Assembly: GCF_000143415.4 (NCBI RefSeq) | Contig: NW_003314308.1 | Location: forward strand, 1,220,654-1,284,653 | DNA length: 64,000 bases | Origin: Selaginella moellendorffii | Lineage: Eukaryota > Plantae > Lycopodiophyta | Direction of reading: 5' to 3' | Part shown: positions 19,222 to 59,763 of the stretch, one piece after another | How the letters are laid out: every line of letters begins with the position of its first letter | Numbering within the stretch: the first letter of the stretch is position 1 | Program-made: the position numbers and the translations under genes | Notes under the pieces: generated by a model | Database searches by the model: none | The model's input: only the letters and a program-made list of their open reading frames with translations | Told to the model about the DNA's origin: nothing

Positions 19222-22200
19222 GGACACAGCAGCCCCATGGAGCAAGAACGTATACCCGGAGGTAGAGCGCCTTGAGTCCTGGTCGCCCGCCCAGTCCGCA
19301 TCCGAGGACCCATGAAGTTCCTGTGACACAGCAGCGCCATAGTGAAGCTGCAAATGCAAGGTACCTCGAACGTAGCGGAAAATCCGCTTCACAGCTTGCC
19401 AATGTGCAGGTCCAGGGTTCTCGAGGAACTGGGAGACCATCCCAACAGCATAGGCGAGATCTGGTCGCGTTCCCAGCATCAAATAAACAAGACTTCCCAC
19501 AGCTTGACGATATGGCACCGTGGCCATGTACTCTCGTTCTTCCTCCGTGACAGGGGCCATGTCACGGCTGAGTTTGTGATTGACCTCAAGAGGTGCAGCA
19601 TATTGAAGCGTTCCAAGATCTCCCTTGATAATGAGCTTGTGTCAAACTCAAGGTGCATGCTCCTCGATTGCGTATAATTTGGATGCCAAGGAAATGGCGA
19701 AGCTCGCCCAGGTCAGACATCTCAAATTCTTCACTCAGCTTCTTTTTCATCTCGTCCAGCAGGTGGCGGGTTTTTGCACCGAGAATGCAGTCGTCAACGT
19801 ACACAGCAACCAGGAGAAAATCGTCACCACACTTGTACAGCTACACGTTTCCTTCCACTGCAAGAGGAACACACCCCAGGCTCTTGAAGAACGCATCAAT
19901 GCGTTCAAACCAAACCCGTGGGGATTGTTTAAGCCCATACAGGGCGCGATTCAGCTTGCAAACAAGATGTTCCTCACCAGGTTTGACGAATCCAGGTGGT
20001 TGCTTGACGTAGACCTCCTCGTTCAACTTGCCGTGCAGGAAAGCAGTGCGAACGTCCCACTGGTGCAGTTCCAGGTCGTACTTGGCAGCCAGTGCAAGGA
20101 TCACTCGCACAGAGGTCAACTTCACAACTGGTGAGTACGTCTCCATGTATTCCAAACCTGGAATCTGGCTGAAGCCCCGTGCGACAAACCTGGCCTTGAA
20201 CTTTGCTACAGTTCCAGTCTGTACTTGACTGTGTAAATCCATTTCGAGCTCACAAGGTGAGCACCTTCAGGTAAGGTTGTCTTTGTCATTGTATTGTTTC
20301 GCTCATGCGAATGCATTTCAGCATTCATGGCTTCTCGCCACTGGGCAGCATGAGGTCCAGCTAATGCCTCGTCAACATTCGCTGGAATGGGGATTCGCTC
20401 TGGATTAGCAGCCACGAAGTTAGCCTGGTGCGTTCCTTTCTTTTTAATTTTTCCAAAACTAAAGAAGGGACGAGATTGCTCAGCTTCCAGTTGCAGCCTC
20501 GATGGTACAGGAACTCGAGCAGAGCGCCGTGGTTCAGGACGTGCTGGAGGGTGGATCACAGGTGGTGGAACAAGTGGAGAGTCTGGGAGAGCTCCCACTG
20601 AAGTTGGCGACCTGCTTCCAGCTCCCACTGAAGGTGATGATCCACGTCCAGCTCCCACTGAAGATGAGCCGAGGAAGAACTCAGGAGCAGCTTGAAATTC
20701 CTCGTCGCCCTCGAAGTAAGTGTTCATCAGCTCTTCAGAGAAGTTAGGTGTTCTCACTGGAGGAGATTCTTGCAGAGGCGTAACTGGAGGGCGTGGTGGC
20801 AGTGCTGGAAGAACCACCACGTTACCACCAGCAGGAGCAAGAGGCAGCAACGGGACTTGAGAAGGAGCTGTAATCACGTGAACTGTGTCCACCCCATGGA
20901 AGTAGGAGCAGGAACTTCAGCGTGATTCTTGTACAGCTTGCTCTCATCAAAGAGCACATCCCGTCTTTCCAGCAAAGTCTTGCGCTTGAGAGAATAAAGG
21001 CGATAGCCTTTCATGCCTTCCAAATATCCCAGGAAAATGGATGGCTCAGCCTTTGACTCCAGCTTTCGGCGTTGCTTGCATAGGCGAAACAGCCAAAAAT
21101 GCGGAGATGATCATAACCAGGTGCGTGACCAGTCCAAAGCTCATAAGGAGTGGTCTTCCCAGGCAGCGCACGTGTTGGCAACCGGTTTCGAACATAAACA
21201 GCCGTGTTAACTGCCTCTCCCCAGAAAGCAGCCGGCATTCCTGCGTGAAGCAGCATACAGCGTGCAGCTTCTATGATGGTGCGATTCACCCTCTCGGCAG
21301 CACCATTCTGGGCATGTGCATCAGGGACAGCATACTGGCGCTGGATCCCAGCTTCAGCACAAAACGTCTCGAATTCTCCAGAGACGAATTCTCCTCCACG
21401 ATCACAGCGGAGCACACGAACTAAACAGCCGTGTAGATTTTCTACCAAAGCCTTGTATTGGCTAAAACAGGAGAACACTTCTGACTTATGAGCCAGCAGA
21501 TACACGATCAGGTACCGCGTGTAATCATCCAGGAAGGTGACTACGTAACGTTTGCCTCCCAAAGATTCAACCATAATTGAACAAACGTCCGAGTGTACCA
21601 ACTCAAGAACAGAACTTGCTCGAGAATGAGAAATCTGTGGAAAAGGAAAAACGTGGTGTTTTCCACCAACACAAGTTTCGCAAAAGAGGCGCCACAGGAA
21701 CATCCACCTTTTTGAGCTGTTGCTCGTTCACGTGACCAAGGCGCTGGTGCCAGGTTGCAAGTGTCGGTGGAACCCGAGCCATCAGCGCCACAGGTGGAAG
21801 GATCACGTGAGCATCCAGGCGGTAGAGCGTATCAACTGGAACTCCAAAAGCGACCTTGTCTCCAGTCTCGGCATCCAGCACGAACGCTCCCTGTGCTGTG
21901 AACAGAGTATCGAAGCCTACTTGAGCAGCAGTTCCAATCGACAGCAGCGTGTGTGTAAGTCCCGGAACATAAGACACAGGATAGATCTCCCGGATTTCTC
22001 CAGAAGAGAGCTGAACCCTGATTGTTCCTTTGCCTAGTACGTCGTGAGCAGAGGAGTCACCGAGTCCCACGGCGTCACTCTCACACGGTTCTTGGTAGGA
22101 AGCCATGGGCGTCATATGGAATGACGCTCCAGAATCCAGCCACAGCTCTGGTCCGAGCACGGGCTGGTGGCTGCTGCTTGCAGAGCGAGCCATCAAGAGC

Positions 22201-23460
22201 TTACGAGGAGTCCCAGAGCCCTTGTCTTTGTTTCCTTTGTCTTTGTTCTTGGCAGCTTTAGCACGATCAGCTTTCTTCTTCTTGCAATCCCTCGCCAAGT
22301 GTCCAGGTTTGTGGCAATAGTGACAAATGCCACGAAAACCAGTGTCGTTCGGCTGAGCTTGAGAGGACGAGGATGATCCTCCCGCAGCGCCAGCATAAAG
22401 CAAGGAAGATTTGGCTGAGGGCATCGCTTCTTTCTTCTGCGTTCCTCTCCAATTAGGGCACCCACGACTTGATCAAAGTTCATGGCCATGTGAGATAGAA
22501 GAGATGCGAGCGTGCTAAACGCAGGCGTGACGGTTGCAAGCAGCAACGCCCTGGCGCGATCGTGACAGGAGGCCCAGCACCAGTCAATTCAGCCATTAGC
22601 CCTCGAATCCGTCCCACGTACACAGCAATGGTTTCACCTGTTTCCATGTGAAGCGCCAAGAGTTGTTGATTCAGCAGCATGGAAGAATTTGCGGCTTGGG
22701 CCACGAAGATCGTGCGAAGCGACGTCCAGATTTCCGGTCTTGGTGAGATCAATCAGCGGCAAGAATTCATCGCTCAATCCCAAGCTAATGAGGGTGATGG
22801 CTTGCTGATTGCGAAAATCCCAATCTGATTGTAGCGTCTGCTCAGCGGGACGAGGTTCAGTCCCATCAACGATGTTCCACGCCCGTTTTGCAGAGAGAAT
22901 CAGCCTGATTCTTGTCGCCCATGTGAAGAAATTCGTGCCACTGAATTTCTCCACCTTCTCTGTGGAAGCCAACCGGTGGCGGTGGCGGCGGCAGCAGCGG
23001 CGGTGGTGGTGGGGGCGGCAGAGGTGGTTAAGGATCATCCCCGAAATCCAATACCATGTTGTGGTGTGAAAAGGGATGAAGGACTTCCCGGGTAGGGCGA
23101 GCACGTTCCCGCCCAGAACGGGCGAGCCGGGCATTGCTGGGCATTAGCCTGGTGAGCATGGAACGTGCGAGCCCGTGCCCGGGAACGACCTTAATGGGCT
23201 ATGGCGAAACCATTAATGGACACATGGAAGAATGTTATTCAAGGATGAGAGGGTTCTCCAAAATTGGCAGTTGGTAACCTAATTCTCTAGAACCTAGCAG
23301 TTGGCAATTAGGTTCTGGAGAACCTGGCAATTGTCAACCTGCAGAGAATTTAACTCGATCTGACAGTTGCTAATGGTTGAATTAAGTTAATAGGCAAGCC
23401 ACAGCCCGTTAAGGACATAACACTCATGAGCTCGTTCATTGTGTTCTGACTCTTTTTACA

Positions 23461-23622: not shown

Positions 23623-25183
23623 ATGGATTCCCAACAAGCCCACATCTTGGCATTCCCTTTCCCAGCGCAGGGCCATATCAATCCTATGATGTTGCTGTGC
23701 CGGAAGTTTGCCTCGATGGGAATCGTCATCACCTTCCTCAACATTCGCAGCCGCCACAACAATCTGGAAGAGGGCGATGATCAGTTCAGGTACGGTTGTG
23801 AGAGTTTCTTTCCTCCCCGCAAGATCTATTTGGAACCCAGGTTTGTGAGCATCTTGGATGAGTGCCTACCAACGGGAAGGTTGGGAAACAACGTGATGAA
23901 GTATCTTATGGCTTTGGAAGAAGGAATGAGGGGTGAATTTGAGCAGATAGTGGCGGATCTCACGGCCGACTCCAGTCGCCCTCCATTGACTTGCATCCTC
24001 TCCGATGCTTTCATGAGCTGGACTCACGATGTAGCCAGCAAGTTTGGAATCTGCCGTGCAGCGCTCTGGACGAGCTCTGCAACTTGGGCTCTCTTGTCTC
24101 TACGCATCCCATTGCTCAGGGATAACGGAGTCCTGCCAGTGAATGGTAGGCCGAGAAATCTTTCGTTTTTTTTGGTTATAGATCCGTATGTATTCCACAG
24201 GGATTCGAAGTAGCAAGATCCTAGACTTTGTACCCGGACTTCCACCAATCCCAGCACGGTTTCTTCCGGAGACGCTGCAGCCCGATGAGAAAGACCCGGA
24301 CTTCCGGTTGAGGATTCGAAGGAATAGTGTCATGCAGAAGGACGCGTGGGTGCTGCTCAACTCGGTCTACGAGATGGAGCCATTGCAGCTGGAGGAGCTT
24401 GCCAGCAGCGACAATCTGCACTTCATCACCGTCGGGCCCTTGCAATGCCTTATGCAACCGTCGAAGGAACATGCTTCTCAGTGGCAGCAGGATCGAAGCT
24501 GCCTGGAATGGCTGGACAAGCAAGCTCCGGGCTCGGTCGTCTACATCTCGTTTGGAAGCTTGGCCATCCTATCATATGATCAGGTGGAGGAGATACTGAC
24601 CGGGATGGAGAAGAGCGGCCATGCATTCTTGTGGGTCATCCGGCTTGACCTTTTCGAAGGCGAGGAGATCCGAGCCAAGTTCCTGGAAAAGATCAGTCTT
24701 ATAGATCGAGGTATTGTCATCCCATGGGCTCCTCAACTAGAGGTTCGTTTTATCATTTGATGATTCTCTAGGTGATCAACATTGAAATTAAGAATCCCTC
24801 CCCAGGTACTACAGCATCGATCCGTGGGAGCGTTTCTCACTCACTCTGGATGGAATTCCGTCATGGAGGCACTTGCAGCTGGTGTTCCACTGCTGTGTAA
24901 GCCTTGCTTTGCCGATCAGATCCTAAACACCGCTCTTGTGGTGGATCACATCAAAGCTGGCCTTCGTGCCACCAAGCCAGACGATGACAAAGAGGTGAGT
25001 TCAAGCCGCATTCACGAGGTGGTGAGTTTTGCCATGGGAGATGACGGGGCTGAGCTCAGAGAAAGAGTTAAACGGTTGGGTCAGACTCTGGCAGAAGCAG
25101 CCGAGCATGGAGGATCCTCGTTGTTAAACTTGCAAGCTTTCTGCCAGGACATGAAACATAGACAGGCTTCCAGAGTAGAATGA
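23623..25183 (+). CDS. UDP-glycosyltransferase, copy 2 (about 10 aa differences from copy 1, frame intact)
   Basis: Same four-exon structure and PSPG box as 10115-11676. Confidence 0.93.
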
Positions 25184-25653
25184 TAAATCTTTAAAATTAT
25201 CAATCTCATGTTGAGATCATTAACAAATCCTGGAAAAGTGGCAGAAGTCGCCATTGGTGGTGACATTGCAACGTGGGCAAATTCTGATCACCCATATGAT
25301 ACTGCTGCAAAAGTTGCTGTTTTATTTGAATTGGCAAATAGTTGGTGGGTCTTTAGATCTAGGTGGTATGTCCTGACATCGCATTGGCCTCGTATATTGA
25401 GGACAATTTATAGTTATCCTAAAATATCTAAGTCTATTCTAAATATATTCAGGATATTATTATTATTAAATGGTTATGTAAAACCTTTTGATCTTTACGT
25501 GTGTGCTTGTGGTGCCAAAAACCCTCCCCCACACTTGAAAAGCAGGTTAATGGGCATTGTCTACCGTACTTACCCACACCTAGTTGCAGTCTTCTTCATT
25601 TTCTTCCACGAACTCGCCATAAAAGGGATCATGCTGCTGTGCAAAACAGAAAA

Positions 25654-27152
25654 ATGGAAGCCCTGTCTATCATCCTAGTGGGAGCAGCTACACTAGTTCT
25701 ATGCTCGCTCTTTGCATCGCGCTTCTTGTATCCGCTTCCACCGGGTCCATGGGGTACTCCACTCTTTGGGCATTTGTACTCGCTCGGGGAATTGCCACAC
25801 CAGACTCTCTCAAAGCTCTCCAAGAAGTATGGCCCGATCATGACTGTCAGGCTGGGAATGGTTCCAGCACTGGTGATTGACTCGCCGCAGTGGGCACGAG
25901 AATTTCTTACAACACATGATATTGCATTTGCCTCTAGGCCTCAGAATACAAACTCGAAGTATTTGTTCTTTAATGGCAGCGACGTTGGGTTTTCTCCGTA
26001 TGGTGAGCACTGGAGGAATCTGAAGAAACTCATCACTATGGAGCTCTTCACCGCCAAGAAGATGGAGGTTTTCAAAGCTCTACGTGCCAATGGGATCCTC
26101 CGCGTGCTGAAATCCATCGCTGCGGAGGAAGGCAACGTAGTCAGCATAAGGAATTTGCTCTCTATGCTCAACATGAACAACATAAGTCAGATGGCTTTCA
26201 GCAAGCAAGTCATTGATGATCCAATATTTCAGAGGTTCCTGGCGGTATTGGAAGAGTCACTGGATCTCATGGCAGTCTTTGTTCTTGGAGATTTCATTCC
26301 ATTCCTTAAGTGGTTTGATCCTTACGGTTATGTCGCAAAAATGAAGGCCAACCGTAAGGAAATCAGCGGGATATACCAGATGATTATTGATGAGCACAAG
26401 TTGAAGAGAAAGAAAAATTGCACTCCCACTGATCTCGTGGATATACTCCTCTCACAGGGGGTGGACGAGACCACAATCAAAGGAACGATCATGGTAATCA
26501 CCATTTGTGTGCATTGTAAGTTTCATAAACCCACTCTTTCGAATCTTGTCACAGGGCATGTTCGTCGCAGGAACTGACACATCTTCACTCACGTCGGAGT
26601 GGGCTCTTACCTCGCTCATAAACAATCCAGGCTGCATGAGGAGAGCTCAGGAGGAGCTCGATAGAGTTGTGGGGCGAGAGCGCCGTGTCCAAGAAGAGGA
26701 TCTATCCAGTCTTGTCTACCTGAAAGCCATTGTCAAGGAGACCTTCCGGCTCCATCCGCCCGCGCCTCTTCTGCTGCCACGCGAGTCAACCCAGGAGTGT
26801 ACAGTCAAAGGCGGGTACAAAATCCCCAAAGGTACACGACTCATTATCAATACCTGGTCAATCGGCCGAGACCCCGTCTCCTGAAGAGTTCAAGCCCGAG
26901 AGATTCCTTGGAAAGTCCATTGATATCAAGGGACAAGACTTTGAGCTCATTCCTTTTGGTGCCGGGCGGAGGATTTGTGCTGGTTTGCCGCTGGGACAGA
27001 CCATGGTGGAGCTCACCCTGGCTAGCCTGCTACAAGCGTTTGAATGGAAGACAGACAAAACGCTGGATATGGAGGAATCCGAAGGGCTGACAACCAGGAT
27101 GAAAGTTCCACTCGCAGCACATGTTACACGCAGGACTTCTCTCAAGTTCTAA
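25654..27152 (+). pseudogene. CYP71-clan P450 copy 2, frameshifted by an 11-bp deletion before PERF and the heme motif
   Basis: Copy 1 gacccc-agcctgtggga-gtcgcctgaa versus copy 2 gacccc-gtctcctgaa. Premature TGA at 26882-26884 puts the heme Cys out of frame. Confidence 0.88.
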
Positions 27153-27522
27153 ATCTTTGCATATCAGATCTGGTCCTCCTATTATAGCTTTGTTGTGAGA
27201 TGCCAAAGCCTTATCTACCATAATTCATCCTTTGTGTTTAAGATTTTATTATTGGGGTTATTTGTGTTTTCTTGCAACCATAAGTACCACAACACAGCCA
27301 GTCCAAAGTTGCGTCAAATCCACCGGTGGTCTCCAAGAAACGTGGAAGCTTTGACAACTTCTTGGAGGAGACTCTAGAGTCGCCGCCGAAAGTATAGCAT
27401 ACAAGCTGCCCCGCCTCCTAAGGTGGAGAACTTTTGCTCGGTTCTGGAAGTGTTGGAAATGACTAACCTCTTTGCTTCCATACTGCTTGCTAGATCAACA
27501 CAAAACTCTTATCTCCTGCCTG

Positions 27523-30161
27523 TCAGTAAGAAGAGGACGAAGGGGGACGATTTCCCGGTGGATACGGAGAGCCTCTCTCCTGCGGTGGAGCTGACGTCCC
27601 GTCCTGGTTGTACTGCTGATGCTGCTGCTGCTGCTGCTGTGATGGATACTGCTGCTGCTGCTGTGATGGATACTGCTGCTGCTGCTGCTGCGGTGCGTAC
27701 TGCTGCTGTGGAGGGTATTGCTGCTGCGGTGGTGGCGAGTTTTGATACTGGTTGTACTGCGGCGGTGGCGCGTTTTGGTTATACTGTTGCTGCTGGTATG
27801 GTGGTGCGTTCTGGTATGGCGGCGGGCTGGAAGGACCGTTCTGGTACTGTGGAGCTCCTGACGCTGGAGGAGCCTGAGAGTAACCAGCGCCATATCCTCC
27901 GGATTGAGAGTAAGGTGATCCCGCTCCCTGCGAGTAGCCACCGCCGCCAGCCGGTGGAGCTTGTGTCCCTGCTGCTGAGTATCCGCCTGGAGCACCTGCG
28001 GCCGAGTATCCTCCCTGCCTTGGAGGCTGCTGCGAGTAAGGTGCCTGACCACCACCTCCTGCGGCCGAGTATCCTCCCTGTGCTGGAGCTTGTTGCGAGT
28101 AAGGTGATTGACCACTTGCGGCTCCAGCAACCGAGTATCCACCGGGAGCTGGAGCCTGCGAGTAAGGCGACTGAGCAGCTCCGTATCCGCCTTGCTGCGA
28201 GTAAGGTGGCTGGCCGCCTTGTGCGTAAGGTGACTGGCCAGTCCCTGCTGCTGCGTATCCACCTTGAGATGGAGCTTGCGAATAAGGTGACTGACCATAT
28301 CCACCACCCGAAGCTGGAGGCTGCGAATAAGGAGACTGAGTGGCTCCATATCCACCTGGAGCTTGCGCCTGTTGTTGCGTCCCGTATCCAGTTTGCGGCT
28401 GCGAGTAACCAGCCGGAGCTTGGGACGCTTGAGCTGGAGCTGGAGTTGGAGCTGGAGCCGATGCTGCTGCTGGGGTTGCTGCTTGGGAAGAAAGTCGTCC
28501 CCCGGAAGCGTCTGAAGTTGCTTCTGGAGCCGGAGCTGCCGGCTGCGCGGCTTCTGCTGGTGGAGCCCCTGCCGATTGCGCTGCTGGCATTGGATATAGT
28601 TCCGCAGGTGTAGTTGGAACGCCAGAAGCCGGTTGAGTCGCGGCTGCTGCAGCCGCTGCTGCCGGAGGGAGGTAGTCAGTCGTTCGAGGAGCCATTGCCG
28701 GCACTTTGATAGTCTTCTTCTCCTTGATGACTTCCAGTACCTTGTTAGCTTCGTCGATGAAGGCCTCGTAACCTTCAATGTTTCGGATCACAATGTCGAT
28801 CTGACAGAAAGCATGTGTCAGAATCAGCGTAAGAAAGAACAGAGAGAAAAATAAAAAGGAAAAGAGAAGAAAGAAAAGGAAGTGCTTACTCGCTCAAAGC
28901 CTTCGCAGCTGTCTTTAAGAGTTCGAAGAGCAACTTCTGCGCCATCCGCATAGGGGTACCTGAGCGTGATTGTTAGTAACTACCCCAAATAAAAGAAATG
29001 CCATACCCGTATATATTGCAAGACAATGGCGGAAATGCAAGATATTTTAGCTTCTCTTTGCGAGCAACCAAGAGAGCAGTCCTGCAGAAGTTGACTTTCG
29101 TGAGAACAAAAAAATCGAAAACAGAAATGCTGAACCTGTAAGCTTTTTCTAGAGTTGGATCAGACTCTCGAACACCTGTTTTCTCGTTCTTCTTGTGAAC
29201 AGCTCCGACTGTGTGAATGACACGATGTACAGGAAGATCAAAGGCTCTAAAACAAGAAAAACGAAAAAACAAAACGAAAAACTCAATACAAAAACTAGAA
29301 ACAACGACAAAGGTACCTCGTACTGATAGCATCACCCATTTCAGCCTTGATTCCCTGAGGAGCAACATCCGGGAGCCTTTGAGTGCATTCCAAGAGCTTC
29401 GAACCAGCAGCTTTGAAAAGAACTACAGAGAAACATACACACGCATTGGAACTATTAAGAAGCATTTGGAGTAAAAGGTGCGAATTACCTGCATTCACAG
29501 CTGGTCCTGTGTTGAGCTTCTTGTTTGCTGGAGCAATCTGCGAGGCAGGAAAAAAAAACGAAAAGAAGAACACGAACCTTACAAACGAAAGAAGAGAAGC
29601 ATAAGAGAGACATACCACTGCATCCTGCTTGCCATCCACAAACCACTTGGACAAGTCCCCAAAGTAAATGGTGCACAGACAAGTTGGCGAGAGCTTGAAG
29701 TGTTCTCGCTGCAAGAGCTCCGTCGGTGGCTTTGGCGGTGTCAGCCATTCCATCACCTTGGACTTCTGCTTGGTGGGATCATAAGGCCGCGGAGTTCCGG
29801 GCTTTGGACGAGGCGAGCCTGGCAATCCAGGAATCTGGCTCCCTGGAAAGTTGAGTCCCAGAGACCCAGAGAATCCCGAGAAGGGAGGCGGCCGCGAGAA
29901 CTTCCTATCGGAGGTAGCCGTGGACGCCGTTGGCCTGGTTGGGAGCTCTTTGGGAAGACTATCGGCAGTGCCATTTGTTCCAGACGGCGGTGGCGAGCCT
30001 GGAGCTCCAGTGCACGCCCTCACACTGAGAGAGAGCGACGAATTCCTGGTTGCGGCGGGCAAATACGCGAAGTTCCCGGGCCTCACATCGCCAAAGAGGC
30101 CAGAGGAATGGATACCTAGCGGAGGCGAGACCCTCGCCTGGCTCACAGCCGCGAGCTGCAT
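27523..30161 (-). CDS. Divergent macrodomain (Appr-1''-p processing/MacroD-like) protein with transit-peptide-like N-terminus and long Q/P/G/Y/S/A low-complexity tail, multi-exon
   Basis: GDLSKWFVDGKQDAV / IAPAN / LFKAAG / FDLPVHRVIHTVG / LKYLAFPPLSCNIYG / YPYADGAEVAL match the plant macro fold. Last exon ~28800-27523 encodes GQSPYSQ/GGYSAAG repeats. Confidence 0.85.
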
Positions 30162-30648
30162 CGTCCAGGAATCCCTGCGCGGCCGGGAGCTCTCAGCGCC
30201 GGATTGCGAGAAAATGCATCACGAATCTCAGCCATACCTCGGAGAGCGCGGAGGAGCACAGCGCCTTATCCCTTCGCGAGAAATATACGTAGGGCTTATA
30301 CCAGGGTTTATGAAAGATCTATCTGGAGGCAATCCCGACCGTCGGTTATCAAGCATCTGAAGCCGTCGGATCTAGATATTTCTTTTTTAAAACGAGGCAT
30401 GTTCTTGGATGGTTTGATCTAATCACATCGATTTTTTTCCCAGGAGATCACATCCCAGCCACTAGAACTAGTGGCCATTGCTCGAAATCGATAGAAAGAA
30501 CCAGGGCATGGAATTCGTCTATTTGGACCACGCGAGAGGATGATTCGCGGAATCAATCTCTTTTAAATATAGCTCCCACACCACGATGCGATAAGATTCT
30601 TCTGGGTGTTCTTCTCGAGCCCTTGGTAGAAGAGATCTTCTAGCTCCC

Positions 30649-32484
30649 ATGGCCACCATGAATGGATCGCCCAAGATCGATCCAGACGCCCTCGTCGATG
30701 CCTGGCTCGCGCGATTGGATTCCTCTCTCGCCTCCGGCGATGCATCGGCCGCTGCCACTCTCTTCGAGGAATCCACTTCCTTCTGGCGGGATCTCATCGC
30801 GTTCACCTGGAACATCGTCACGGTCGAGGGCCGGTCACAGATCCACGCCATGCTCCAATCCACGCTCGAATCAGTCGCGCCCAAGGGTTGGGTCCGCAAC
30901 GGTACCGCCAGCTACAGCGCGGACTCGGGCGTCATTGAGGCCTGGATCAAGTTCGAGACGCGCGACGCGGTATGTACGGGGCATTTGCGCCTGATGGCCA
31001 CTACTTCCCTCTGTCGTACGCTACTCACCGCCATGGAGGGGCTCAAGGATTTCCCAGAGAAGAAGGGCCATACGCGGCCCAAAGGTGTGACGCACGGCGT
31101 CATACGGCACCGCGCGTCATGGCTGGACGGGCGCAAGGAAGAGGAGCGGACGCTGGGCAGTACCGTGCAGCCCTATTGCGTCATTGTCGGGGGCGGGCAG
31201 GCGGGTATCGGGCTTGCCGCGCGGCTCCGGCAGCTCGGCGTGCCGTGCATCGTGGTAGAGAAGAACCCGCGGCCGGGCGATTCGTGGAGGAGTCGCTACA
31301 AATCGCTATGTCTCCACGATCCGGTGTGGTATGATCATCTTCCCTATTTGCCATTCCCGGAGAACTGGCCGATTTTCACGCCCAAGGACAAGATGGGAGA
31401 TTGGCTCGAGGCTTACACCAAGATCATGGAGATCAACTACTGGACCTCCAGCGAGTGCCTGGGAGCTCGTTTCGATCCACAGTCCGGGGAGTGGGAGGTG
31501 AAGATCCTGCGGGATAGGAGCAAGGAGGTGACCTTGCGACCCAAGCAGCTCATCCTGGCGACCGGGATGTCAGGATTTCCCAATGTGCCACGGATTCCCG
31601 GGCAGGAGGAATTCGTGGGCGATCTCCATCACTCGAGCAAGCATCCGGGAGGCAAAGCTTACAAGGGGAAGAGAGCGGTGATCCTGGGATCCAACAATTC
31701 GGCCCACGACATCGCCGCCGATCTCTGGGAGAATGGCGCCGCGGAGGTGACGATGATCCAGCGATCCTCCACCCACGTAGTTCGATCCGAGTCGCTCCTC
31801 CAATTCGTGATGAAAAACACCTACTCGGAATCGGCGGTAGAGTCGGGGCTCACGACTGACAAGGCCGACATGATCTTCGCGAGCGTGCCATACAAGATCA
31901 TGGGCGATGTTAATCGACCAACCTACGATGCGATCCGAGCCCACGACAAGGATTTCTACGCCGCGCTCACCAAGACTGGATTCATGCTCGACTTTGGCGA
32001 CGATGACTCGGGGCTCTTCATGAAGTACCTCCGCCGTGGATCCGGCTACTACATCGACGTGGGCGCATCCCAGCTGTTGATCGACGGCGAGATCAAGCTC
32101 CGCAGTGGCGTCACCATTGCGTCGCTCAAGCCGAGCTCGGTGGTGCTGAGCGACGGTACGGAGATCGCGGCCGATGTGGTGATTTTGGCCACGGGGTACG
32201 GATCCATGAACCAATGGGCCGCGAAGCTAATCTCCCAGGAGGTGGCGGATCGCGTGGGCAAGTGTTGGGGGCTGGGATCGAACACGCGCAAGGATCCCGG
32301 GCCGTGGGAGGGGGAGCTCCGGAATATGTGGAAGCCCACCGCGCAGGAAGGGCTGTGGTTCCATGGTGGGAATCTCCACCAGGCTCGTCACTACTCACTC
32401 TATCTGGCGCTACAGCTCAAGGCGAGGATGGAAGGAATCACGACCCCGGTGTATGGCATACCCAAGGTCCGCCACCTCAGTTAA
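30649..32484 (+). CDS. Type II (bacterial-like) flavin-containing monooxygenase, 611 aa, intronless, copy 1
   Basis: N-terminal extension (WRDLIAFTWN), FAD Rossmann VGGGQAG, WRSRYKSLCLHDP, FxGxxxHSSxH (FVGDLHHSSKH), second Rossmann GSNNSAHD, ATGY. Confidence 0.93.
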   Translation: MATMNGSPKIDPDALVDAWLARLDSSLASGDASAAATLFEESTSFWRDLIAFTWNIVTVEGRSQIHAMLQSTLESVAPKGWVRNGTASYSADSGVIEAWIKFETRDAVCTGHLRLMATTSLCRTLLTAMEGLKDFPEKKGHTRPKGVTHGVIRHRASWLDGRKEEERTLGSTVQPYCVIVGGGQAGIGLAARLRQLGVPCIVVEKNPRPGDSWRSRYKSLCLHDPVWYDHLPYLPFPENWPIFTPKDKMGDWLEAYTKIMEINYWTSSECLGARFDPQSGEWEVKILRDRSKEVTLRPKQLILATGMSGFPNVPRIPGQEEFVGDLHHSSKHPGGKAYKGKRAVILGSNNSAHDIAADLWENGAAEVTMIQRSSTHVVRSESLLQFVMKNTYSESAVESGLTTDKADMIFASVPYKIMGDVNRPTYDAIRAHDKDFYAALTKTGFMLDFGDDDSGLFMKYLRRGSGYYIDVGASQLLIDGEIKLRSGVTIASLKPSSVVLSDGTEIAADVVILATGYGSMNQWAAKLISQEVADRVGKCWGLGSNTRKDPGPWEGELRNMWKPTAQEGLWFHGGNLHQARHYSLYLALQLKARMEGITTPVYGIPKVRHLS

Positions 32485-32849
32485 GTCAAATCAACTAGTC
32501 AATCCTAGTAAATTTGTCAATGATAGTCAAACATTTAAAATCTGAAAAAAGTAATCGGGTATGATCAGCCTGCTAGTGCCTGTGGTGGTAGGGTGCAGTG
32601 CAAATCTGAAGCATCGCTTCCTGGGGAACAATGCTCGTCCCACAGCGATCAACGTTACGGGGTGGATTTTTGTCAGCTGCAAGAGACAAGGAGCATTCAC
32701 TAGAGGGATTGCAGCCAGGCCGGAATCAATGTTTTGTTCATGCAGATGAAGCTGAATTATTATCCACTACTTCTGGCGCTAAATGTAAGACGATTTATTT
32801 TCCATTAGCTTAAACAAAGTTTAGGTGGATCTTTTTGTTCCGTGTAGAA

Positions 32850-35800: not shown

Positions 35801-36790
35801 CAATTTCGTTATCTTTACTATATATTTTTATTTGATTTTGTACTCCTTTTTAACAATAGCATCAATAGCATCAATAGCATCATTTGTTGTGGGGGGAGCT
35901 ATAATGTCACTCCCCCTTATGTGACAACTCTAGTAGTATGCCACCATTTGGATTTGCCATGGGGGGAGCTATAGTGCCACTCCCCCTTGCGTAACAGTTC
36001 AGGTGGTGGTGAGTGCCACCACTCGGAGTGGCCATAGGGGGAGTTATGGTGTCACTCCCTTTGACAAAGTAGTATGATTTGCAGTCGATTCCTATGTTGA
36101 GGCTCCCCCCTCATTGAGCATAGAATAACATAAGGGATGGGTAGGGGGGAGTGCTTTTTGCTTGTGTGCTTGCTACTTAACCCATCTCTTGCTTAGAAAC
36201 CTTAATTACCAAAAACCTTAACCCAATTTTAATGTTGATATCAACCTTAGAAATACTTAAAGCATTATATCAATTTTGGAGAAAATGAAATAAAGTTACA
36301 GTTGTAAGAATTTACTTCTATTAATGACTTGATTTTTCTTGTAAGGTGTGTTTTTATTTTCCCTTATTTTAGGTATGGCTAAAAATCCAATAACAAAGGA
36401 TGTTACATAGCAATAGTGAGATATCAAAGGAGGGAGCTATCGTTAGAAATAGAGTTGCTGATAGAAAAAGGATCCTTATGTGCTTTCAATCTGATCAAGT
36501 TAGAATGTTATAAAGGGCTCAAGGTATAGGGTCACTTTGGGTTACTATGACAAATATTTTTTTAGGTGGGAAAATGTATTTTGCACTAAATCCAATTGTA
36601 GAAGCAGAGTTTCAACTAAAGAAGTTTGTGGTAGGTTTAAGTGATGCAAAAATGTAGAGTAGAGAGGTTTTTTCTTTAACAACAAATAAGAAAGAGCCAT
36701 TTTCGACAATAATAAACTCTTCTATAGTAGACTCAATAAAAAATTGTAGATATAGAAGAATATATAGGTAGTGAATCTGTGTTTGAGCTA
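32850..36790. mobile_element. AT-rich degenerate repeat/TE-derived region (unclassified)
   Basis: Abrupt drop in GC, broken ORFs, a long poly-C run and hairpin repeats. No domain recognised. Confidence 0.4.
35885..36065. repeat. Three ~70-76 bp tandem units, each with a GGGGGAG...CTCCC(CC) hairpin
   Basis: gggggagctataatgtcactccccc (35891), gggggagctatagtgccactccccc (~35962), gggggagttatggtgtcactccc (36037). Confidence 0.8.
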
Positions 36791-38016
36791 CTTATAAGTA
36801 ACTAAATTTTCCATTCTACTTTAGTCACTTAACCACACTTATTACCACTTAAAAGAGTCTCACTCACAATCTTCATAAGTTTTATTCCCGATTTAGGGAT
36901 ATGCTAGCCCCATGAATGGCATCTATGCTACTCTACCTTTGCACTTGGTCCATCTGCTCCACATGTTTAATCCCATGACAAACAGTCAAAGGTACTACTG
37001 ACATCTCAACCTATTATGTTAACACTATGTCTATTCACCTTTGTCTCATGATAATCCAAGACTACTCATACCATAGCTTTGTCTCCCAAAGACTAAGCCA
37101 TCTGTCCATGAGTGGTCATCTTATAACCCCACTTTAGCATCCTGAGGATGCTTAAAAATATAAGGAACACCCTTCTCGAATATCCCTTCTTCAATCTCTA
37201 TTAAGTCCCTTTTTGTCCATAGCTGTACTCATCAACACTGCTATTCGATTAGGGCTTAAAAGCCCAATTACTAAGTCCCATTGACCTCTAGGATTTCTTT
37301 GTTATGTGATTGTACCCTTAGTCACTACACAGGAGGATTGCTCCTCTTTTTTTCTATAGTTTAGGACTTTGGGATGATATTTTGAAACACTGCGGCCCAA
37401 CACATGCCTCGTGGGTACTGTCCCCATATTCCACCCTTTAGTGCTCTAGCCATATGGTTAAAATGAGGTTCCAATGAGCCACACTAGGTATCCAAGTAGG
37501 TAGTGCCACCCACACTTGGATTAGGAGCATTGATATTTCGATTTCTCAAGGGAATTAAAGCTGTCTCTTGAACACTTCACCAAATTACCCCATTTGTCCG
37601 TCCATATTCACTTTAGCCTTAGACTCTTCAATGGTTATATAATCACCCACCATATGGGTATAGCCTTCCTTGGTCACACTAGCCTTTCCTGGCTAAATTG
37701 GTTCCACTAGAGTCCTCCCCTTACTATACTTTTGGAGCTCACCAAACCCCTAAGGATTTGGGAGATGATCGCTTTGGGCTTTCACCCTCAAACTTGGACT
37801 CGAACTCGCACTTAGACTCGAGCTCTGGCTCAGTCTTGGTCTTAGTCTCGATCTCAGTGTCGGTCTCGATTTTGGTCTCAGTTTCAAACTCAACCTTGGG
37901 CTCCATCATCTCAGACTCTATCTCAGACCCCTTCTTGGACTCCATCTTGGGTCCATCTCGAATCCATCTCAAACTCCATCTCGGGTCCATCTTGGACTCC
38001 AACTTAGGTCCATTTC

Positions 38017-38690: not shown

Positions 38691-38788
38691 ATCTCGGGTC
38701 CATCTCAAACTCATTCTTAGACTCCATCTTTGGTCTACCTTGGACTCCTTCTCAGACTCTATCTTAGGTCCATCTTGGACTCCAACTT

Positions 38789-50512: not shown

Positions 50513-52348
50513 ATGGCCACCGTGAATGGATCGCCCAAGATCGATCCAGACGCCCTCGTCGATGCCTGGCTCGCGCGATTGGATTCCTCTCTCGCCTCCG
50601 GCGATGCATCGGCCGCTGCCAATCTCTTCGAGGAATCCACTTCGTTCTGGCGGGATCTCATCGCGTTCACCTGGAACATCGTCACGGTCGAGGGCCGGTC
50701 ACAGATCCACGCCATGCTCCAATCCACGCTCGAATCAGTCGCGCCCAAGGGTTGGGTCCGCAACGGTACCGCCAGCTACAGCGCGGACTCGGGCGTCATT
50801 GAGGCCTGGATCAAGTTCGAGACGCGCGACGCGGTATGTACGGGGCATTTGCGCCTGATGGCCACTACTTCCCTCTGTCGTACGCTACTCACCGCCATGG
50901 AGGGGCTCAGGGATTTCCCAGAGAATAAGGGCCGTACGCGGCCCAACGGTGTGACGCACGGCGTCATACGGCACCGCGCGTCATGGCTGGACGGGCGCAA
51001 GGAAGAGGAGCGGACGCTGGGCAGTACCGTGCAGCCCTATTGCGTCATTGTCGGGGGTGGGCAGGCGGGTATCGGGCTTGCCGCGCGGCTCCGGCAGCTC
51101 GGCGTGCCGTGCATTGTTGTAGAGAAGAACCCGCGGCCGGGCGATTCGTGGAGGAACCGCTACAAATCGCTGTGCCTCCACGATCCGGTGTGGTATGATC
51201 ATCTCCCCTATTTGCCATTCCCGGAGAATTGGCCGATCTTCGCGCCCAAGGACAAGATGGGAGATTGGCTCGAGGCGTACACCAAGATCATGGAGATTAA
51301 CTACTGGACCTCCAGCGAGTGCCTGGGAGCCCGATTGGATCCACAGTCCGGAGAGTGGGAGGTGAAGATCCTGCGAGATGGGAGCAAGGAGGTGACCTTG
51401 CGACCCAAGCAGCTCATCCTGGCGACCGGGATGTCAGGATTTCCCAATGTGCCACGGATTCCCGGGCAGGAGGAATTCGTGGGCGGTCTCCATCACTCGA
51501 GCAAGCATCCGGGAGGCGAAGCTTACAAGGGGAAGAGAGCGGTGATCCTGGGATCCAACAATTCGGCCCACGACATCGCCGCCGATCTCTGGGAGAATGG
51601 CGCCGCGGAGGTGACGATGATCCAGCGATCCTCCAGTCACGTTGTTCGATCGGAGTCGCTTTTCCGCTTCCTGACGCAGGAGATCTACTCGGAATCGGCG
51701 GTAGAGTCGGGGATCACGACTGACAAGGCGGACATGATCTTCGCGAGCTTGCCATACAAGATCATGGGCGATGCCCAGCGATGCAATTCCGATGCGATCC
51801 GAGCCCACGACAAGGATTTCTACGCCGCGCTCACCAATACTGGATTCATGCTCGACTTTGGCGACGACGACTCGGGGCTCTTCATGAAGTACCTCCGCCG
51901 TGGATCCGGCTACTACATCGACGTGGGCGCATCCCAGCTGTTGATCGACGGCGAGATCAAGCTACGCAGTGGCGTCACCATCGCGTCGCTCAAGCCGAGC
52001 TCGGTGGTGCTGAGCGACGGTACGGAGATCGCGGCCGATGTGGTGGTTTTAGCCACGGGGTACGGATCTATGAACCAATGGGCCGCGAAGCTAATCTCCC
52101 AGGAGGTGGCGGATCGCGTGGGCAAGTGTTGGGGGCTGGGATCGAACACGCGCAAGGATCCCGGGCCGTGGGAGGGGGAGCTCCGGAATATGTGGAAGCC
52201 CACCGCGCAGGAAGGGCTGTGGTTCCATGGTGGGAATCTCCACCAGGCTCGTCACTACTCGCTCTATCTGGCGCTACAGCTCAAGGCGAGGATGGAGGGA
52301 ATCGCGACGCCGGTGTATGGCATGCCCAAGGTCCACCACCTCAGCTAG
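50513..52348 (+). CDS. Type II (bacterial-like) flavin-containing monooxygenase, 611 aa, intronless, copy 2
   Basis: Same motifs as copy 1, about 32 aa differences. Homologous ~150 bp upstream region (50360-50450 vs 30519-30610). Confidence 0.93.
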   Translation: MATVNGSPKIDPDALVDAWLARLDSSLASGDASAAANLFEESTSFWRDLIAFTWNIVTVEGRSQIHAMLQSTLESVAPKGWVRNGTASYSADSGVIEAWIKFETRDAVCTGHLRLMATTSLCRTLLTAMEGLRDFPENKGRTRPNGVTHGVIRHRASWLDGRKEEERTLGSTVQPYCVIVGGGQAGIGLAARLRQLGVPCIVVEKNPRPGDSWRNRYKSLCLHDPVWYDHLPYLPFPENWPIFAPKDKMGDWLEAYTKIMEINYWTSSECLGARLDPQSGEWEVKILRDGSKEVTLRPKQLILATGMSGFPNVPRIPGQEEFVGGLHHSSKHPGGEAYKGKRAVILGSNNSAHDIAADLWENGAAEVTMIQRSSSHVVRSESLFRFLTQEIYSESAVESGITTDKADMIFASLPYKIMGDAQRCNSDAIRAHDKDFYAALTNTGFMLDFGDDDSGLFMKYLRRGSGYYIDVGASQLLIDGEIKLRSGVTIASLKPSSVVLSDGTEIAADVVVLATGYGSMNQWAAKLISQEVADRVGKCWGLGSNTRKDPGPWEGELRNMWKPTAQEGLWFHGGNLHQARHYSLYLALQLKARMEGIATPVYGMPKVHHLS

Positions 52349-56565: not shown

Positions 56566-59500
56566 CTAACCAGGAACTGGGGTGTTGTGATGCTCCCCGG
56601 CATAGATCTGGGAGAGGAGGACAAACGGAGCCGCACAGCTTTCGGTGGATTGCATCTGAGCCGCTGTTCTTGCTCCGCGGTGGAGGTCCTGTTGGTTCTT
56701 GCAAGCCGCCAGCATCGTGTTCAAAGTCACAACGTCTGGCCGGTCGATCATGCTGATGAGCTCCTCCGCCTCGTCCAGCCGTCCTGCCCGACACAGGAGA
56801 TCCACCATGCACTGGTAATGCTCGTCCAAGTGTGGCAGCTCAAAGTCGGAGATGATCCAAGTGAAGTAGTGGCACGCTTCGTCGGTCAGCCCCGCGTGGC
56901 TGCACGAGTTGAGGATGGCGATGAGCGTAACTCCATCCGGCACAACTCCCTCGTTGACCATCAGCCTGTAGGTGTCAATGATATCGTCGTGCTGTCCGTG
57001 CCGAGCACACAGTGTCATGATCGCGGACCACGAGATCCTGCTGCTCCTATCCATGCTCTCGAAGATCTGTCTCGCGTCTCTCATGCTCCCACACCTCGCG
57101 TACATGTTGATGAGACCGTTCCCAAGGAAGTCGGACATCTTTCCTCCCTGTGCGGCCAGGATGCGAGCATGGACTTCTCTGCCATCTTCCAAGTTGGAGC
57201 ACGCCTGAAGAACGGACGAGAACGTCACCTCGTCTGGTTCCGAATCCATCCGCTTGAACAGACTGAGAGCTTCTCGCTCGTTCCCAGCCGAGACACAGCC
57301 TCCAATCAACGCGGTCCAAGTTACGGTACACTTCTCCCCCACGCTCTCAAACACCTGCCTTGCCTCGCCCAAGGCGTTGCACCTCGCGTACATGGTGATC
57401 AACGCGTTCTTCACGAAGTCTGGTAGCATCCCGCAGGCTAGAGCACGGGAATGGACCTCTCTTCCGGTTCGCAGATCTTCCACTCGAGCACAGGAACTCA
57501 GGACGCTCATAAACGTGACGACGCTCGGTGACAGCCCCTCCAAAACCATCTCCCGATACACTCTGATGGCCTCTTCGCCACTGTCATGCCTGTTAAAAGC
57601 TGCTATCACCGCGTTCCACATGACCACCTTGTTTTGCTGCCTCGTCTTGGCAAACACCTCCCTGATCTCTTGCTCACTCCCACACTTGCAGTACATGTTG
57701 ACAAGCGCGACGGCAATATCCGGCAGGCGTTCCAGTTGACACTCGATGATCCTCCTGTGAACAGCCTTGCCTTGTCGAAACGTTTGAGGGGAGCACGCCG
57801 AAACAACGGCCGCGTATGTCGTATAGCTCGGCTCCTTCCCCTCCAAAAGCATCTTGTGATAGAGACCAAAGGCTTCGGTGCTGTAATCCCCACACTGCTG
57901 CTGCTGCTGCGAGTAGCACTCTAGCATAAGTGTCCATGTCACGACGTCCTTTTCCTCTGTCCTATCGAAAACTTCCAACGCTTCCTTCACGGAGCCGCAT
58001 TTGATGTGCAGACTGAGCAGAGCGTTTCCTATCGGCTGAAATCGAAAATCCTGCTTTATCGCCAAAAATTTTCCCTGTTCCAAGTCCCCCTCAATGGAGC
58101 AAGCCATGATGGCTTCGGCAACTGACACGCTATCCGGCTCCACACCTTCAGGCTTCATCCTATGGAACAATTCCAGTGCCGCTTTAGAATCACCTTGTTG
58201 CGCGTAGCCTTTTATCATGACTGTCCAAGTCAGGACATCCCGGCTCTCCATTCTATCAAATATCTTCCGTGCCTCTTCCATGTCACCACACTTACTGTAC
58301 GCCGAGACAAGATCTGCCCGTATGGAATCCATCTTATCTATCCCACTCCAATCAATAAGTTCCCGGATCGTTTTGCTCAACCGTGAATCTCGCTTTAGCG
58401 AACAGGCCTGGAGTGCGCTGCAAAAAGTTGGCAAGCTCAGCTGCATTCCCTCGAGAATCATCTGCCTGAAAAGCGTCAGCGCCTTACCGGGGTCACCGAA
58501 CTGTGCATGGCTCGTTACCATGGCTGACCAGCTCACGTAGTCCTTTTGCTGCATCTTCGCAAACAAGAACTCCGCGTCCTCCAGACTCCCACACCTGGAA
58601 TACATGAACATGAGCGCAGTCTCCACAACAGTGATCGATTCGAAACCAAAAGCCTTGACTTCCTCGTGGAGATGCTTACCTTGCTCTAACGTCGAGCACG
58701 CGGACAGCAGCGCGACGAAGGTAGCGGAAGTTGGCGAGACGCAATCTCGCCGCATTCCATCGTAGAAAGCGAAAGCCTCGCTGCCGAATCCAAGCTGCGC
58801 ATAGCCCGCGATCATCGACGTCCATGTAAAGACATCTCTGGTCGCAAGCCCGCTGAAAACCTCGAGCGCCTCGTCCATGCAGCCACACTTGGAGTACATG
58901 TTGATGAGAGCGTTCTCCATGACAATGTCACGCTGCAAACCAAGAGAAGTTATACGCTGGTGGATGGAAGAACCAAGTTCCAAGTTACCTAGCGACGCAC
59001 AGGCCGTGAGCAAGCTCGCAAAGACGAATCCATTCGGCTCCAAGCGCTCCCTCTTCATCCGATGGTAGAGCTCCAGTGCCTGCTCGGGATAGTCACACTG
59101 CACGAACGCCGAGATCATGGCGTTCCAGGACACCAAGTTCTTCCTTGGCATGGCGTCGAAGATCTTGATGCCTTCCAGCACGCTACCACACCTGGCGTAC
59201 ATGGTCACCAGCGAGTTCTGGACGACCACGTCGCTGGCGATGGATGGCGACTCGAGAACTCTCTTGTGGATTTCCCTGCCTTGCTCCAGATCCCCCAGCC
59301 CGGCACAAGCCGCAAGAGCGCTCGCAAAGATGAATCCATTCGGCGGGATGTCCATCTTGTGGAAGAGCTCCAGAGCTTCCCTGTTCTTGCCGCTCCTGGC
59401 ATAGCCAGAGATCATGAGATTCCACACGAAGTCGTTCTTGTCCGCGATCTCGTCGAATGCCGCCTTGGCATCGGCCAGGCAGCCGCATTTGGCGTACATC

Positions 59501-59670
59501 TGGACGACGCAGCGCCGCAGATAGCTGCTATCGCCATAGCCGGACCTGCGAAGATCGTCGTGGAGCCGCCGCCCCTCGGAAACGTTGCGCCTGGAGCAGC
59601 ATTCCTGCAAGAGCCTGGCGTAGCGCGAGACCTCGGATTCCTTCAACGCAGCTCCAGAGGAAGCTCGCAT
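56566..59670 (-). CDS. PLS-class pentatricopeptide repeat protein ending in an E domain, no DYW (organellar RNA-editing factor type)
   Basis: Intronless >1000-codon ORF with repeated NALINMYxKCG / VSWNAMI / VTFxSxLxAC units. Ends HYQCMVDLLCRAGRL...FVLLSQIYA. First ATG at 59670. Confidence 0.93.
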   Translation of the reverse strand: MRASSGAALKESEVSRYARLLQECCSRRNVSEGRRLHDDLRRSGYGDSSYLRRCVVQMYAKCGCLADAKAAFDEIADKNDFVWNLMISGYARSGKNREALELFHKMDIPPNGFIFASALAACAGLGDLEQGREIHKRVLESPSIASDVVVQNSLVTMYARCGSVLEGIKIFDAMPRKNLVSWNAMISAFVQCDYPEQALELYHRMKRERLEPNGFVFASLLTACASLGNLELGSSIHQRITSLGLQRDIVMENALINMYSKCGCMDEALEVFSGLATRDVFTWTSMIAGYAQLGFGSEAFAFYDGMRRDCVSPTSATFVALLSACSTLEQGKHLHEEVKAFGFESITVVETALMFMYSRCGSLEDAEFLFAKMQQKDYVSWSAMVTSHAQFGDPGKALTLFRQMILEGMQLSLPTFCSALQACSLKRDSRLSKTIRELIDWSGIDKMDSIRADLVSAYSKCGDMEEARKIFDRMESRDVLTWTVMIKGYAQQGDSKAALELFHRMKPEGVEPDSVSVAEAIMACSIEGDLEQGKFLAIKQDFRFQPIGNALLSLHIKCGSVKEALEVFDRTEEKDVVTWTLMLECYSQQQQQCGDYSTEAFGLYHKMLLEGKEPSYTTYAAVVSACSPQTFRQGKAVHRRIIECQLERLPDIAVALVNMYCKCGSEQEIREVFAKTRQQNKVVMWNAVIAAFNRHDSGEEAIRVYREMVLEGLSPSVVTFMSVLSSCARVEDLRTGREVHSRALACGMLPDFVKNALITMYARCNALGEARQVFESVGEKCTVTWTALIGGCVSAGNEREALSLFKRMDSEPDEVTFSSVLQACSNLEDGREVHARILAAQGGKMSDFLGNGLINMYARCGSMRDARQIFESMDRSSRISWSAIMTLCARHGQHDDIIDTYRLMVNEGVVPDGVTLIAILNSCSHAGLTDEACHYFTWIISDFELPHLDEHYQCMVDLLCRAGRLDEAEELISMIDRPDVVTLNTMLAACKNQQDLHRGARTAAQMQSTESCAAPFVLLSQIYAGEHHNTPVPG

Positions 59671-59763
59671 CGATCGATCCACACAAACCCTAAACCTTCT
59701 CTCTTTCCAAGAATCTAGGGTTCTTACAAACTCTCGTCTCTCTCTCTCCTCTCTCACACTCGC

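Follow-up and report, generated by a model that had tools for sequence, protein, structure and literature searches.

The locus described here raises the question of how a gene whose nearest relatives outside Selaginella are bacterial came to stand among spliced genes in a lycophyte genome, and whether it arrived there together with similar genes of other plants or by a separate route. The locus lies in a stretch of 64,000 nucleotides (nt) of Selaginella moellendorffii (assembly GCF_000143415.4, contig NW_003314308.1, positions 1,220,654 to 1,284,653 of the forward strand), hereafter the window. In it an open reading frame (ORF) of 611 amino acids (aa), which the ORF listing of the window shows to be unbroken and which we call copy 1, encodes a flavin-containing monooxygenase (FMO). 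An earlier note on this DNA, made from its letters alone, had read the gene as an intronless type II FMO acquired horizontally from bacteria, flanked by plant genes and transposable elements and duplicated together with its promoter. We find it to be an already known member of a known plant family that well-supported sequence evidence traces to an old transfer from bacterium to plant, and we give an even chance to the reading that the Selaginella genes share that one ancient acquisition with those of liverworts and ferns.

Integration of the FMO genes in the plant nuclear genome is confirmed, because the same flanks occur on two haplotype scaffolds and an unspliced RNA contig lies beside a spliced neighbour. 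The products of copy 1 and of a second copy downstream (copy 2) are both recorded letter for letter on the 1,463,349-bp scaffold GL377612.1 of S. moellendorffii GCA_000143415.2, and versions 94-99% identical to them stand on the 1,387,680-bp scaffold GL377619.1 (SELMODRAFT_422043, and SELMODRAFT_116690 / LOC9661707). The SELMODRAFT_422043 locus is collinear with window positions 49711-62357 at 97.1% over 12.7 kb and is thus the other haplotype of copy 2. The stretch was found in at least 20 public sequencing runs from nine studies, and four runs from four studies were compared over window positions 29000-34000 for RNA contigs. In these runs the Macro-domain gene next to copy 1 is spliced, having four to five GT..AG introns on the minus strand, each of 54-78 nt, and this marks the contigs as derived from RNA. 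Copy 1 is joint-free in the same runs: a 2377-nt contig of run X1 covers 30477-32842, and a separate 481-nt contig of run X5 covers 32434-32911, comprising the 3' end of the coding sequence (CDS) and 3' untranslated region (UTR). No RNA contig coverage was seen beyond about 33.0 kb (~33007) in the four runs. The joint-free contigs thus show copy 1 to be both intronless, as the earlier note had described it, and transcribed. The run X1 contig carries an 11-nt insertion, AGTTCCAGGTA, after position 30605 in the 5' UTR, together with two nearby substitutions, and is probably a transcript of the other allele.

Bacterial contamination or an assembly artefact would explain a bacterial-looking protein encoded without introns by a CDS whose GC content (0.61) lies above the window mean (0.46). 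The chance of this is nevertheless negligible, as the two copies, on a scaffold of 1.46 Mb, have spliced plant genes and a copia element around them, their allelic copies lie on a second scaffold of 1.39 Mb that is collinear over the 12.7 kb, the transcripts bear AT-rich, plant-like UTRs, the sequence is present in at least nine studies, and no bacterial protein comes closer to it than 34-35% divergence. The plant flanks to which the earlier note pointed are the spliced Macro-domain gene, cytochrome P450 genes, a UDP-glycosyltransferase (UGT), a PPR gene and a copia integrase/gag fragment, and its preference for integration over contamination is borne out by these flanks on both haplotypes and by the UTR-bearing, unspliced transcripts.

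The closest relatives of the encoded protein were sought in 5.8 billion clustered proteins, in 1.84 billion representatives at 50% identity and in a scan of GTDB. Among the clustered proteins only those of S. moellendorffii itself exceed 66% identity, with none between 66% and 94%, and the next 119 matches are bacterial or metagenomic (61-66%), headed by Modicisalibacter, Marinobacter and Halomonas (64-66%). The GTDB scan returned more than 600 loci, and the best 80 of them, at 60-66% identity, span Gamma-, Alpha- and Betaproteobacteria, Actinomycetota, Chloroflexota, Eremiobacterota and Verrucomicrobiota. Among the 50%-identity representatives the next full-length groups reach at most 47% and include a Ceratopteris protein and fungi at 40-44%. 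The Selaginella and Marchantia FMOs are 57-66% identical to bacteria of many phyla and only 38-44% to fungi, and in trees rooted on fungi and distant bacteria the plant groups fall inside the bacterial radiation. Because of this far greater closeness to bacteria and this nesting, an old bacterium-to-plant transfer at the base of the plant family appears well supported. A Mantamonas plastica hit from EukProt, labelled as a protist, groups in the ML tree as the sister of Marinobacter sp. NFXS11 (99/95), inside a Marinobacter clade (100/97), and most likely stems from bacteria that were prey or contaminated the culture behind that transcriptome.

The bacterial origin claimed for copy 1 in the earlier note stands in so far as its nearest relatives outside Selaginella are bacteria, both by identity and in the maximum likelihood (ML) tree; as a novelty of Selaginella it does not, since liverworts and ferns carry the intronless family as well. 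Ceratopteris and Marchantia queries retrieved sequences of Marchantia (M. polymorpha), two Riccia species, Adiantum capillus-veneris, A. nelumboides and Ceratopteris, along with transcript contigs. Members from these four genera share with Selaginella the domain architecture, the motif GDSWRxRY, both of the insertions described below and a similar root-to-tip divergence. Identity of Selaginella is 57.6% with Marchantia, 59-61.5% with A. nelumboides and 60-65.5% with bacteria; for Marchantia the values are 64-68% with A. nelumboides and 58-62% with bacteria. The genes of Marchantia (1827 bp) and A. nelumboides (1782 bp) are intronless too, which rules out the absence of introns as a sign of recent transfer; a high GC content at third codon positions (GC3) is ruled out in the same way, as the value of 0.78 in Selaginella is equalled in Marchantia. 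The only homologue with introns is the fast-evolving Ceratopteris richardii KP509_18G002400, which sits on a long branch (0.75) and takes 7.6 kb to encode 615 aa, a span that indicates introns gained. The family offers a clean example of a bacterial enzyme that non-seed plants have retained while seed plants have lost it.

Whether plants acquired this enzyme once or twice turns first on two rare changes. The first lengthens the interval from the conserved Phe39 to Trp46 by one residue (LFEESTSFWRD; bacterial form LFxEE-CYWRD), and the second is an extra Ala (LWENGAAEVTM, against bacterial LWENG-ADVTM). In a scan of insertion spacing that took in 562 sequences, every one of the 24 plant sequences, among them all eight Selaginella entries, has both, and none of the roughly 352 non-plant sequences does; the plant count comprises 23 sequences labelled as plant and one labelled 'other' that we identified as Adiantum nelumboides. 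As the two insertions co-occur only in plants, they speak for a single origin of the plant genes. A third change, a deletion of three to four residues after Tyr392, is confined to liverworts and ferns and fits the branching (Selaginella,(liverworts, ferns)). Selaginella also has 4 of 16 residues specific to the plant clade, where 40 control bacteria have a mean of 0.38 and a maximum of 2. On the single-origin reading, a bacterial gene would have entered plants long ago and founded the whole plant type IIb FMO family, the Selaginella genes would have branched after that acquisition and before the liverwort and fern genes, and the locus would have been duplicated later, with gene conversion keeping both coding regions alike.

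Phylogenetic placement of the Selaginella genes was assessed with plant sampling made up of Selaginella, liverworts and ferns; algal (Klebsormidium GAQ82387.1), hornwort and other lycophyte members were left out. Liverworts and ferns join firmly, both in a FastTree analysis of 418 full-length sequences (support 1.0) and in an IQ-TREE analysis of 70 rows by 602 columns under LG+C20+F+G4 by the posterior mean site frequency (PMSF) approach (94/100), where Selaginella is itself a 100/100 group on a stem of 0.61. Trees from the IQ-TREE -fast option fell 55-65 log-likelihood (lnL) units below the careful tree and were discarded. Approximately unbiased (AU) tests were run on regrafted trees, the PMSF versions with stored PMSF site frequencies. 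A tree with Selaginella sister to liverworts plus ferns was not rejected, either under LG+F+G4 (delta-lnL 27.3, p 0.09-0.12) or under PMSF (delta-lnL 12.1, p 0.15-0.19), and about 9.4 of those 12.1 PMSF units come from three sites, D134, P136 and Q195. An all-plant clade placed beside the gammaproteobacteria, which would accommodate both signals, was worse than one placed on the backbone, and was rejected under PMSF (p 0.02-0.03) and not under LG. Root-to-tip distances from the backbone are 0.73 for Selaginella, 0.74 for Marchantia and 0.68 for Adiantum, as opposed to 0.25-0.49 for bacteria; this parity means that the time over which the Selaginella gene has diverged, or else its rate, equals that of its counterparts in the other plants, and the gene is old under either origin. 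The metagenomic contig whose FMO pairs with Selaginella in the FastTree analysis is bacterial by gene content; its FMO gene adjoins a gene for an FMN-dependent dehydrogenase and overlaps by 56 nt a 254-aa ORF of unknown family, and the pair of FMO and 254-aa ORF recurs on an independent Logan contig.

A considerable body of evidence nonetheless weighs against a shared acquisition. FastTree unites Selaginella with the metagenomic bacterium (0.99) inside a 71-sequence group of Halomonadaceae, Marinobacter and Marinomonas (0.93); the PMSF tree unites it with Halomonadaceae (81/93) over an unresolved backbone; Dayhoff-6 recoding leaves it there (SH-aLRT 90, ultrafast bootstrap (UFBoot) 68); and the C-terminal partition alone does the same (0.95). 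The best all-plant tree is worse by 12.1 (PMSF) to 27.3 (LG) lnL units, and both the species-tree position, sister to ferns, and a position sister to liverworts are rejected by the AU test (p about 0.001), so that a single origin would have to invoke hidden paralogy or an artefact. Selaginella further has 5 of 13 residues specific to the gammaproteobacterial group, as against a mean of 0.55 and a maximum of 2 in 40 control bacteria, and spacings like those of the insertions occur singly in bacteria, in 3 and in 14-17 sequences, which makes convergence possible. The clade test that the earlier note had proposed is thus split: the ML tree does place Selaginella in a bacterial group, at weak support (81/93), and the all-plant clade, with its shared insertions, is not rejected (p-AU 0.12-0.19).

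These observations would be accounted for by an independent old transfer to the Selaginella lineage from a gammaproteobacterium like Halomonadaceae or Marinobacter, parallel to the acquisition by liverworts and ferns, with the two insertions either convergent or already present in an unsampled donor. We rate this as a serious possibility of somewhat less than even probability. It is the best ML topology in every analysis, it accords with the higher identity to Modicisalibacter, Marinobacter and Halomonas than to liverworts and Adiantum (57-61.5%) and with the gap between 66% and 94% in the clustered proteins, and its signal is mildly present in both protein halves and persists on recoding. However, its support remains below the starred level, most of its PMSF advantage resides in the three sites named above, and it demands convergence of two plant-exclusive insertions plus four plant-specific residues. 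The GARP composition of Selaginella (0.283) is near that of Halomonadaceae (0.289) and away from that of other plants (0.262-0.266), a known source of attraction, and the Selaginella branch is as long as those of other plants. Two other accounts of the conflict were ruled out: a pure compositional artefact, as recoding keeps the placement at lower support, and a mosaic gene with a gamma-like N-terminus and a plant-like C-terminus, which the positions of the signature residues had suggested, as the two halves agree. By the counts of signature residues against the control bacteria, the dual affinity of the Selaginella FMO is real. Of nearly the same, less than even, probability as the independent transfer is the fuller proposal of at least two entries into plants, one into a liverwort and fern (perhaps algal) line and another from a Halomonadaceae-like donor into Selaginella, followed there by convergent insertions and root and meristem expression; if true, the two entries would represent parallel horizontal gene transfer and then convergent adaptation to a plant host. 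Phylogenies restricted to plants show the family as monophyletic by construction and so hide the question of one transfer or two, for which the two co-occurring plant-only insertions supply a simple marker when new sequences are scored.

The affinities of the protein itself are those of the type IIb FMOs, a class described by an N-terminal NTF2-like domain of about 160 aa ahead of the monooxygenase domain, the form FxGxxxHxxxH-P of the FMO-identifying motif (consensus FxGxxxHxxx(H/y/f)P) and an Asn in the NAD(P)H motif (PMC7570161). Copy 1 has FVGDLHHSSKHP, GGGQAG and GSNNSA, the last with Asn where the second Gly would stand and Ala where the third would. Its residues 13-611 are collinear with residues 25-618 of the 618-residue chain 8acs_A (E 5e-253), that is JsFMO, a type II FMO and Baeyer-Villiger monooxygenase (BVMO) of Janthinobacterium svalbardensis with a SnoaL-like domain at its N-terminus (PMC10028610). 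Since 8acs_A aligns through it, the N-terminal extension of about 170 aa reported in the earlier note is present and is nothing extra, being the family's own SnoaL/NTF2-like domain; a Pfam scan of copy 1 gave Pyr_redox_3, Pyr_redox_2 and FMO-like and no SnoaL match at E<=0.01, PF12680 (SnoaL_2) is precomputed on many close relatives, and NCBIfam profiles gave matches below threshold only. The active-site residues of JsFMO are His216, Asp217 and Tyr458 (PMC10028610); their counterparts His223, Asp224 and Tyr467 align with 232, 233 and 474 of the 8acs_A chain (an offset of 16 in the deposited chain) and are invariant when aligned with relatives from bacteria and Marchantia. The NAD(P)H motif is GANNSAHD in 8acs_A and GSNNSAHD in copy 1, and this motif is present as first noted, together with FxGxxxHSSxH and a C-terminal end reading KDPGPWEGE...WFHGGNLHQARHYS. 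The motif at residues 210-217 is GDSWRSRY in copy 1 and GDSWRNRY in copy 2; because GDSWRxRY is conserved in the bacterial relatives also, it does not discriminate plants from bacteria.

Selaginella FMO thus shares with JsFMO its length class (611 and 618 residues), the SnoaL-like domain, the FAD motif, G-x-NNSAHD and the His/Asp/Tyr set, and differs in being encoded in a plant nucleus with eukaryotic UTRs and in having the two plant-type insertions as well as small ones specific to Selaginella. JsFMO is 71% identical to FMO-F of Rhodococcus jostii (PMC10028610), and the R. jostii RHA1 enzymes FMO-E, -F and -G, to which we liken the plant protein by description, belong to the same type IIb clade by the assignment of PMC7570161. 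These bacterial enzymes have been shown to carry out Baeyer-Villiger oxidation and sulfoxidation and to accept NADH and NADPH alike (Riebel et al., cited in PMC7570161 and PMC10028610). Motifs and alignment therefore agree with the assignment to the class of Rhodococcus FMO-E/F/G rather than to YUCCA made at the outset. The type I BVMO fingerprint FxGxxxHxxxW-P/D is absent, with His332 at the Trp position, and BVMOs of the PDB match copy 1 over its Rossmann parts only (E 1e-7 to 1e-15).

On these alignments the Selaginella FMO is predicted to be a single-component class B flavoprotein in which the SnoaL-like domain is followed by FAD and NAD(P)H Rossmann domains. It is probably cytosolic, as comparison with the bacterial proteins shows no presequence at its N-terminus. 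From homology to JsFMO and to R. jostii FMO-E/F/G we infer both its chemistry and its cofactor use. NADH or NADPH would reduce the FAD, and reaction of O2 with the reduced FAD would give a C4a-(hydro)peroxyflavin. This would then attack a ketone in a Baeyer-Villiger oxidation, in which Tyr467 would stabilise the Criegee intermediate with His223 and Asp224 beside the flavin; alternatively, the peroxyflavin may oxygenate a sulfur.

Four S. moellendorffii sequences were placed in the type IIb clade with the Rhodococcus enzymes in 2020 (PMC7570161). The same plant family has been named 'sYUC' (2021, 2023; PMC10015382) and, in 2026, 'Seedless FMO', with members in algae, liverworts, hornworts, lycophytes and ferns, the motif GDSWRNRY, a structural match to JsFMO and, according to that study, no member characterised (PMC13557801). 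NCBI and UniProt label these genes 'probable indole-3-pyruvate monooxygenase YUCCA5', and an auxin-biosynthetic function is further suggested by the high expression in root and root apical meristem of Smo422043, a 'sYUC' of 2021 for which a role in auxin synthesis was proposed (PMC8521068) and which is an allele of copy 2. YUCCA, moreover, itself oxidises an alpha-keto acid in a Baeyer-Villiger-type reaction (PMC13557801), and it has the same class B FMO fold and FAD and NAD(P)H Rossmann motifs. However, the motifs that define YUCCA are absent from copy 1, where H-P stands for Y/F-K/R and GSNNSA for GxGxSG, and copy 1 has the SnoaL-like domain that YUCCA is without. YUCs and sYUCs are at most 23% identical (PMC12659883) and do not form sister clades. 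For these reasons the YUCCA5 label is not supported by the sequences, and we consider it improbable that the gene encodes an indole-3-pyruvate monooxygenase. Given sequences that mark them as Baeyer-Villiger-type type II FMOs of bacterial descent, the assumption in the literature that these genes make auxin in lycophyte roots needs a biochemical test.

The duplication reported in the earlier note is likewise real in part. Copy 2 is intact and sits 19.9 kb downstream of copy 1, to which it is 95% identical in amino acids and 96.2% in nucleotides, and it is 97% identical to Smo422043 on the other haplotype. The promoter was not included, at least not detectably: nucleotide homology of the copies is limited to 30631-32480 and 50496-52344, covering the CDS and the 18 nt upstream of it, and the 5' UTR, which starts at 30477, extends well outside it. 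A comparison of the 1-kb upstream and downstream flanks of both copies at word size 7 gave no similarity beyond one exact match of 17 nt in the downstream flanks (E 5e-5). The copies differ at 32 aa sites, concentrated at residues 375-426, with dS 0.083 and dN/dS 0.32, and the alleles on the other haplotype show mixed copy-1 and copy-2 states. Since dS is low without homology in the flanks and the alleles mix the states of the copies, gene conversion confined to the coding regions would be the simplest reading. The RefSeq model XP_002981097.2 (611 aa, 'YUCCA5') is a chimera over window positions 30649-52348; it has the copy-1 state at the first differing site (residue 4) and agrees with copy 2 at the remaining 31, which indicates a spurious 'intron' of about 19.9 kb bridging both paralogues. 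The gene table carries this over-long model too.

Features of the FMO locus and its surroundings. Positions are those of the window; residue numbers are those of copy 1.
Feature	Positions	Strand	Evidence or remark
FMO copy 1 (type IIb / 'Seedless' FMO)	30649..32484	+	complete intronless CDS, 611 aa + stop
5' UTR of copy 1, minimum extent (at least 172 nt)	30477..30648	+	GC 0.46; RNA contig
3' UTR of copy 1, minimum extent (at least 358 nt)	32485..32842	+	GC 0.42; same RNA contig
N-terminal SnoaL/NTF2-like domain and linker, about residues 13-174	30685..31170	+	aligns with 8acs_A residues 25-190
LFEESTSFWRD, residues 38-48, first insertion (one residue longer than in bacteria, plant-exclusive)	30760..30792	+	
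FAD-binding GGGQAG, residues 181-186	31189..31206	+	
GDSWRSRY...CLHDP, residues 210-225, Seedless-FMO motif and His223/Asp224	31276..31323	+	8acs_A alignment, invariant columns
FMO-identifying motif FVGDLHHSSKHP, residues 322-333, type IIb form FxGxxxHxxxH-P	31612..31647	+	
NAD(P)H-binding GSNNSAHD, residues 347-354, Asn for second Gly	31687..31710	+	
LWENGAAEVTM, residues 359-369, second insertion (extra Ala relative to bacteria, plant-exclusive)	31723..31755	+	
YSESAVESG loop, residues 392-400, of bacterial length; site of the 3-4-residue deletion in liverworts and ferns	31822..31848	+	
GSGYYID, residues 464-470; Tyr467 corresponds to JsFMO Tyr458 (hydrogen-bond donor, Baeyer-Villiger chemistry)	32038..32058	+	
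FMO copy 2	50513..52348	+	complete intronless CDS, 611 aa
Macro-domain gene, upstream neighbour	27258..30161	-	gene call; spliced RNA contigs in 4 runs
UGT and cytochrome P450 genes, unit of the repeated UGT/P450 block	23623..26884	+	
PPR-repeat gene downstream of copy 2	56569..59757	-	
Ty1/copia-type retrotransposon fragment (rve, gag-pre-integrase, zf-CCHC)	21014..22424	-	

Directly upstream of the FMO pair the UGT/P450 block recurs two to three times with 94-100% identity (8298-10621, 14504-15816 and 23530-27476, with 12523-14385 in addition). From Pfam and repeat evidence, the adjacent P450, UGT and FMO genes could form a gene cluster for specialised metabolism. In the interval that separates the FMO copies, positions 33000-50400 have a GC content of 0.29-0.45 and contain no ORF of 150 aa or more. 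These 17 kb hold two dispersed families of direct repeats, D1 and D2, with units of 220-290 nt and five copies each, as well as long imperfect inverted repeats (37068-37561 with 43149-43642, and 37193-37653 with 41827-42287), and probably consist of decayed non-autonomous transposons. A structural difference between the haplotypes adjoins copy 2: collinearity begins only about 800 bp upstream of it, at position 49711, and further upstream the other haplotype (its bases 1-9242) matches the window only as short repeat pieces of 74-81% identity.

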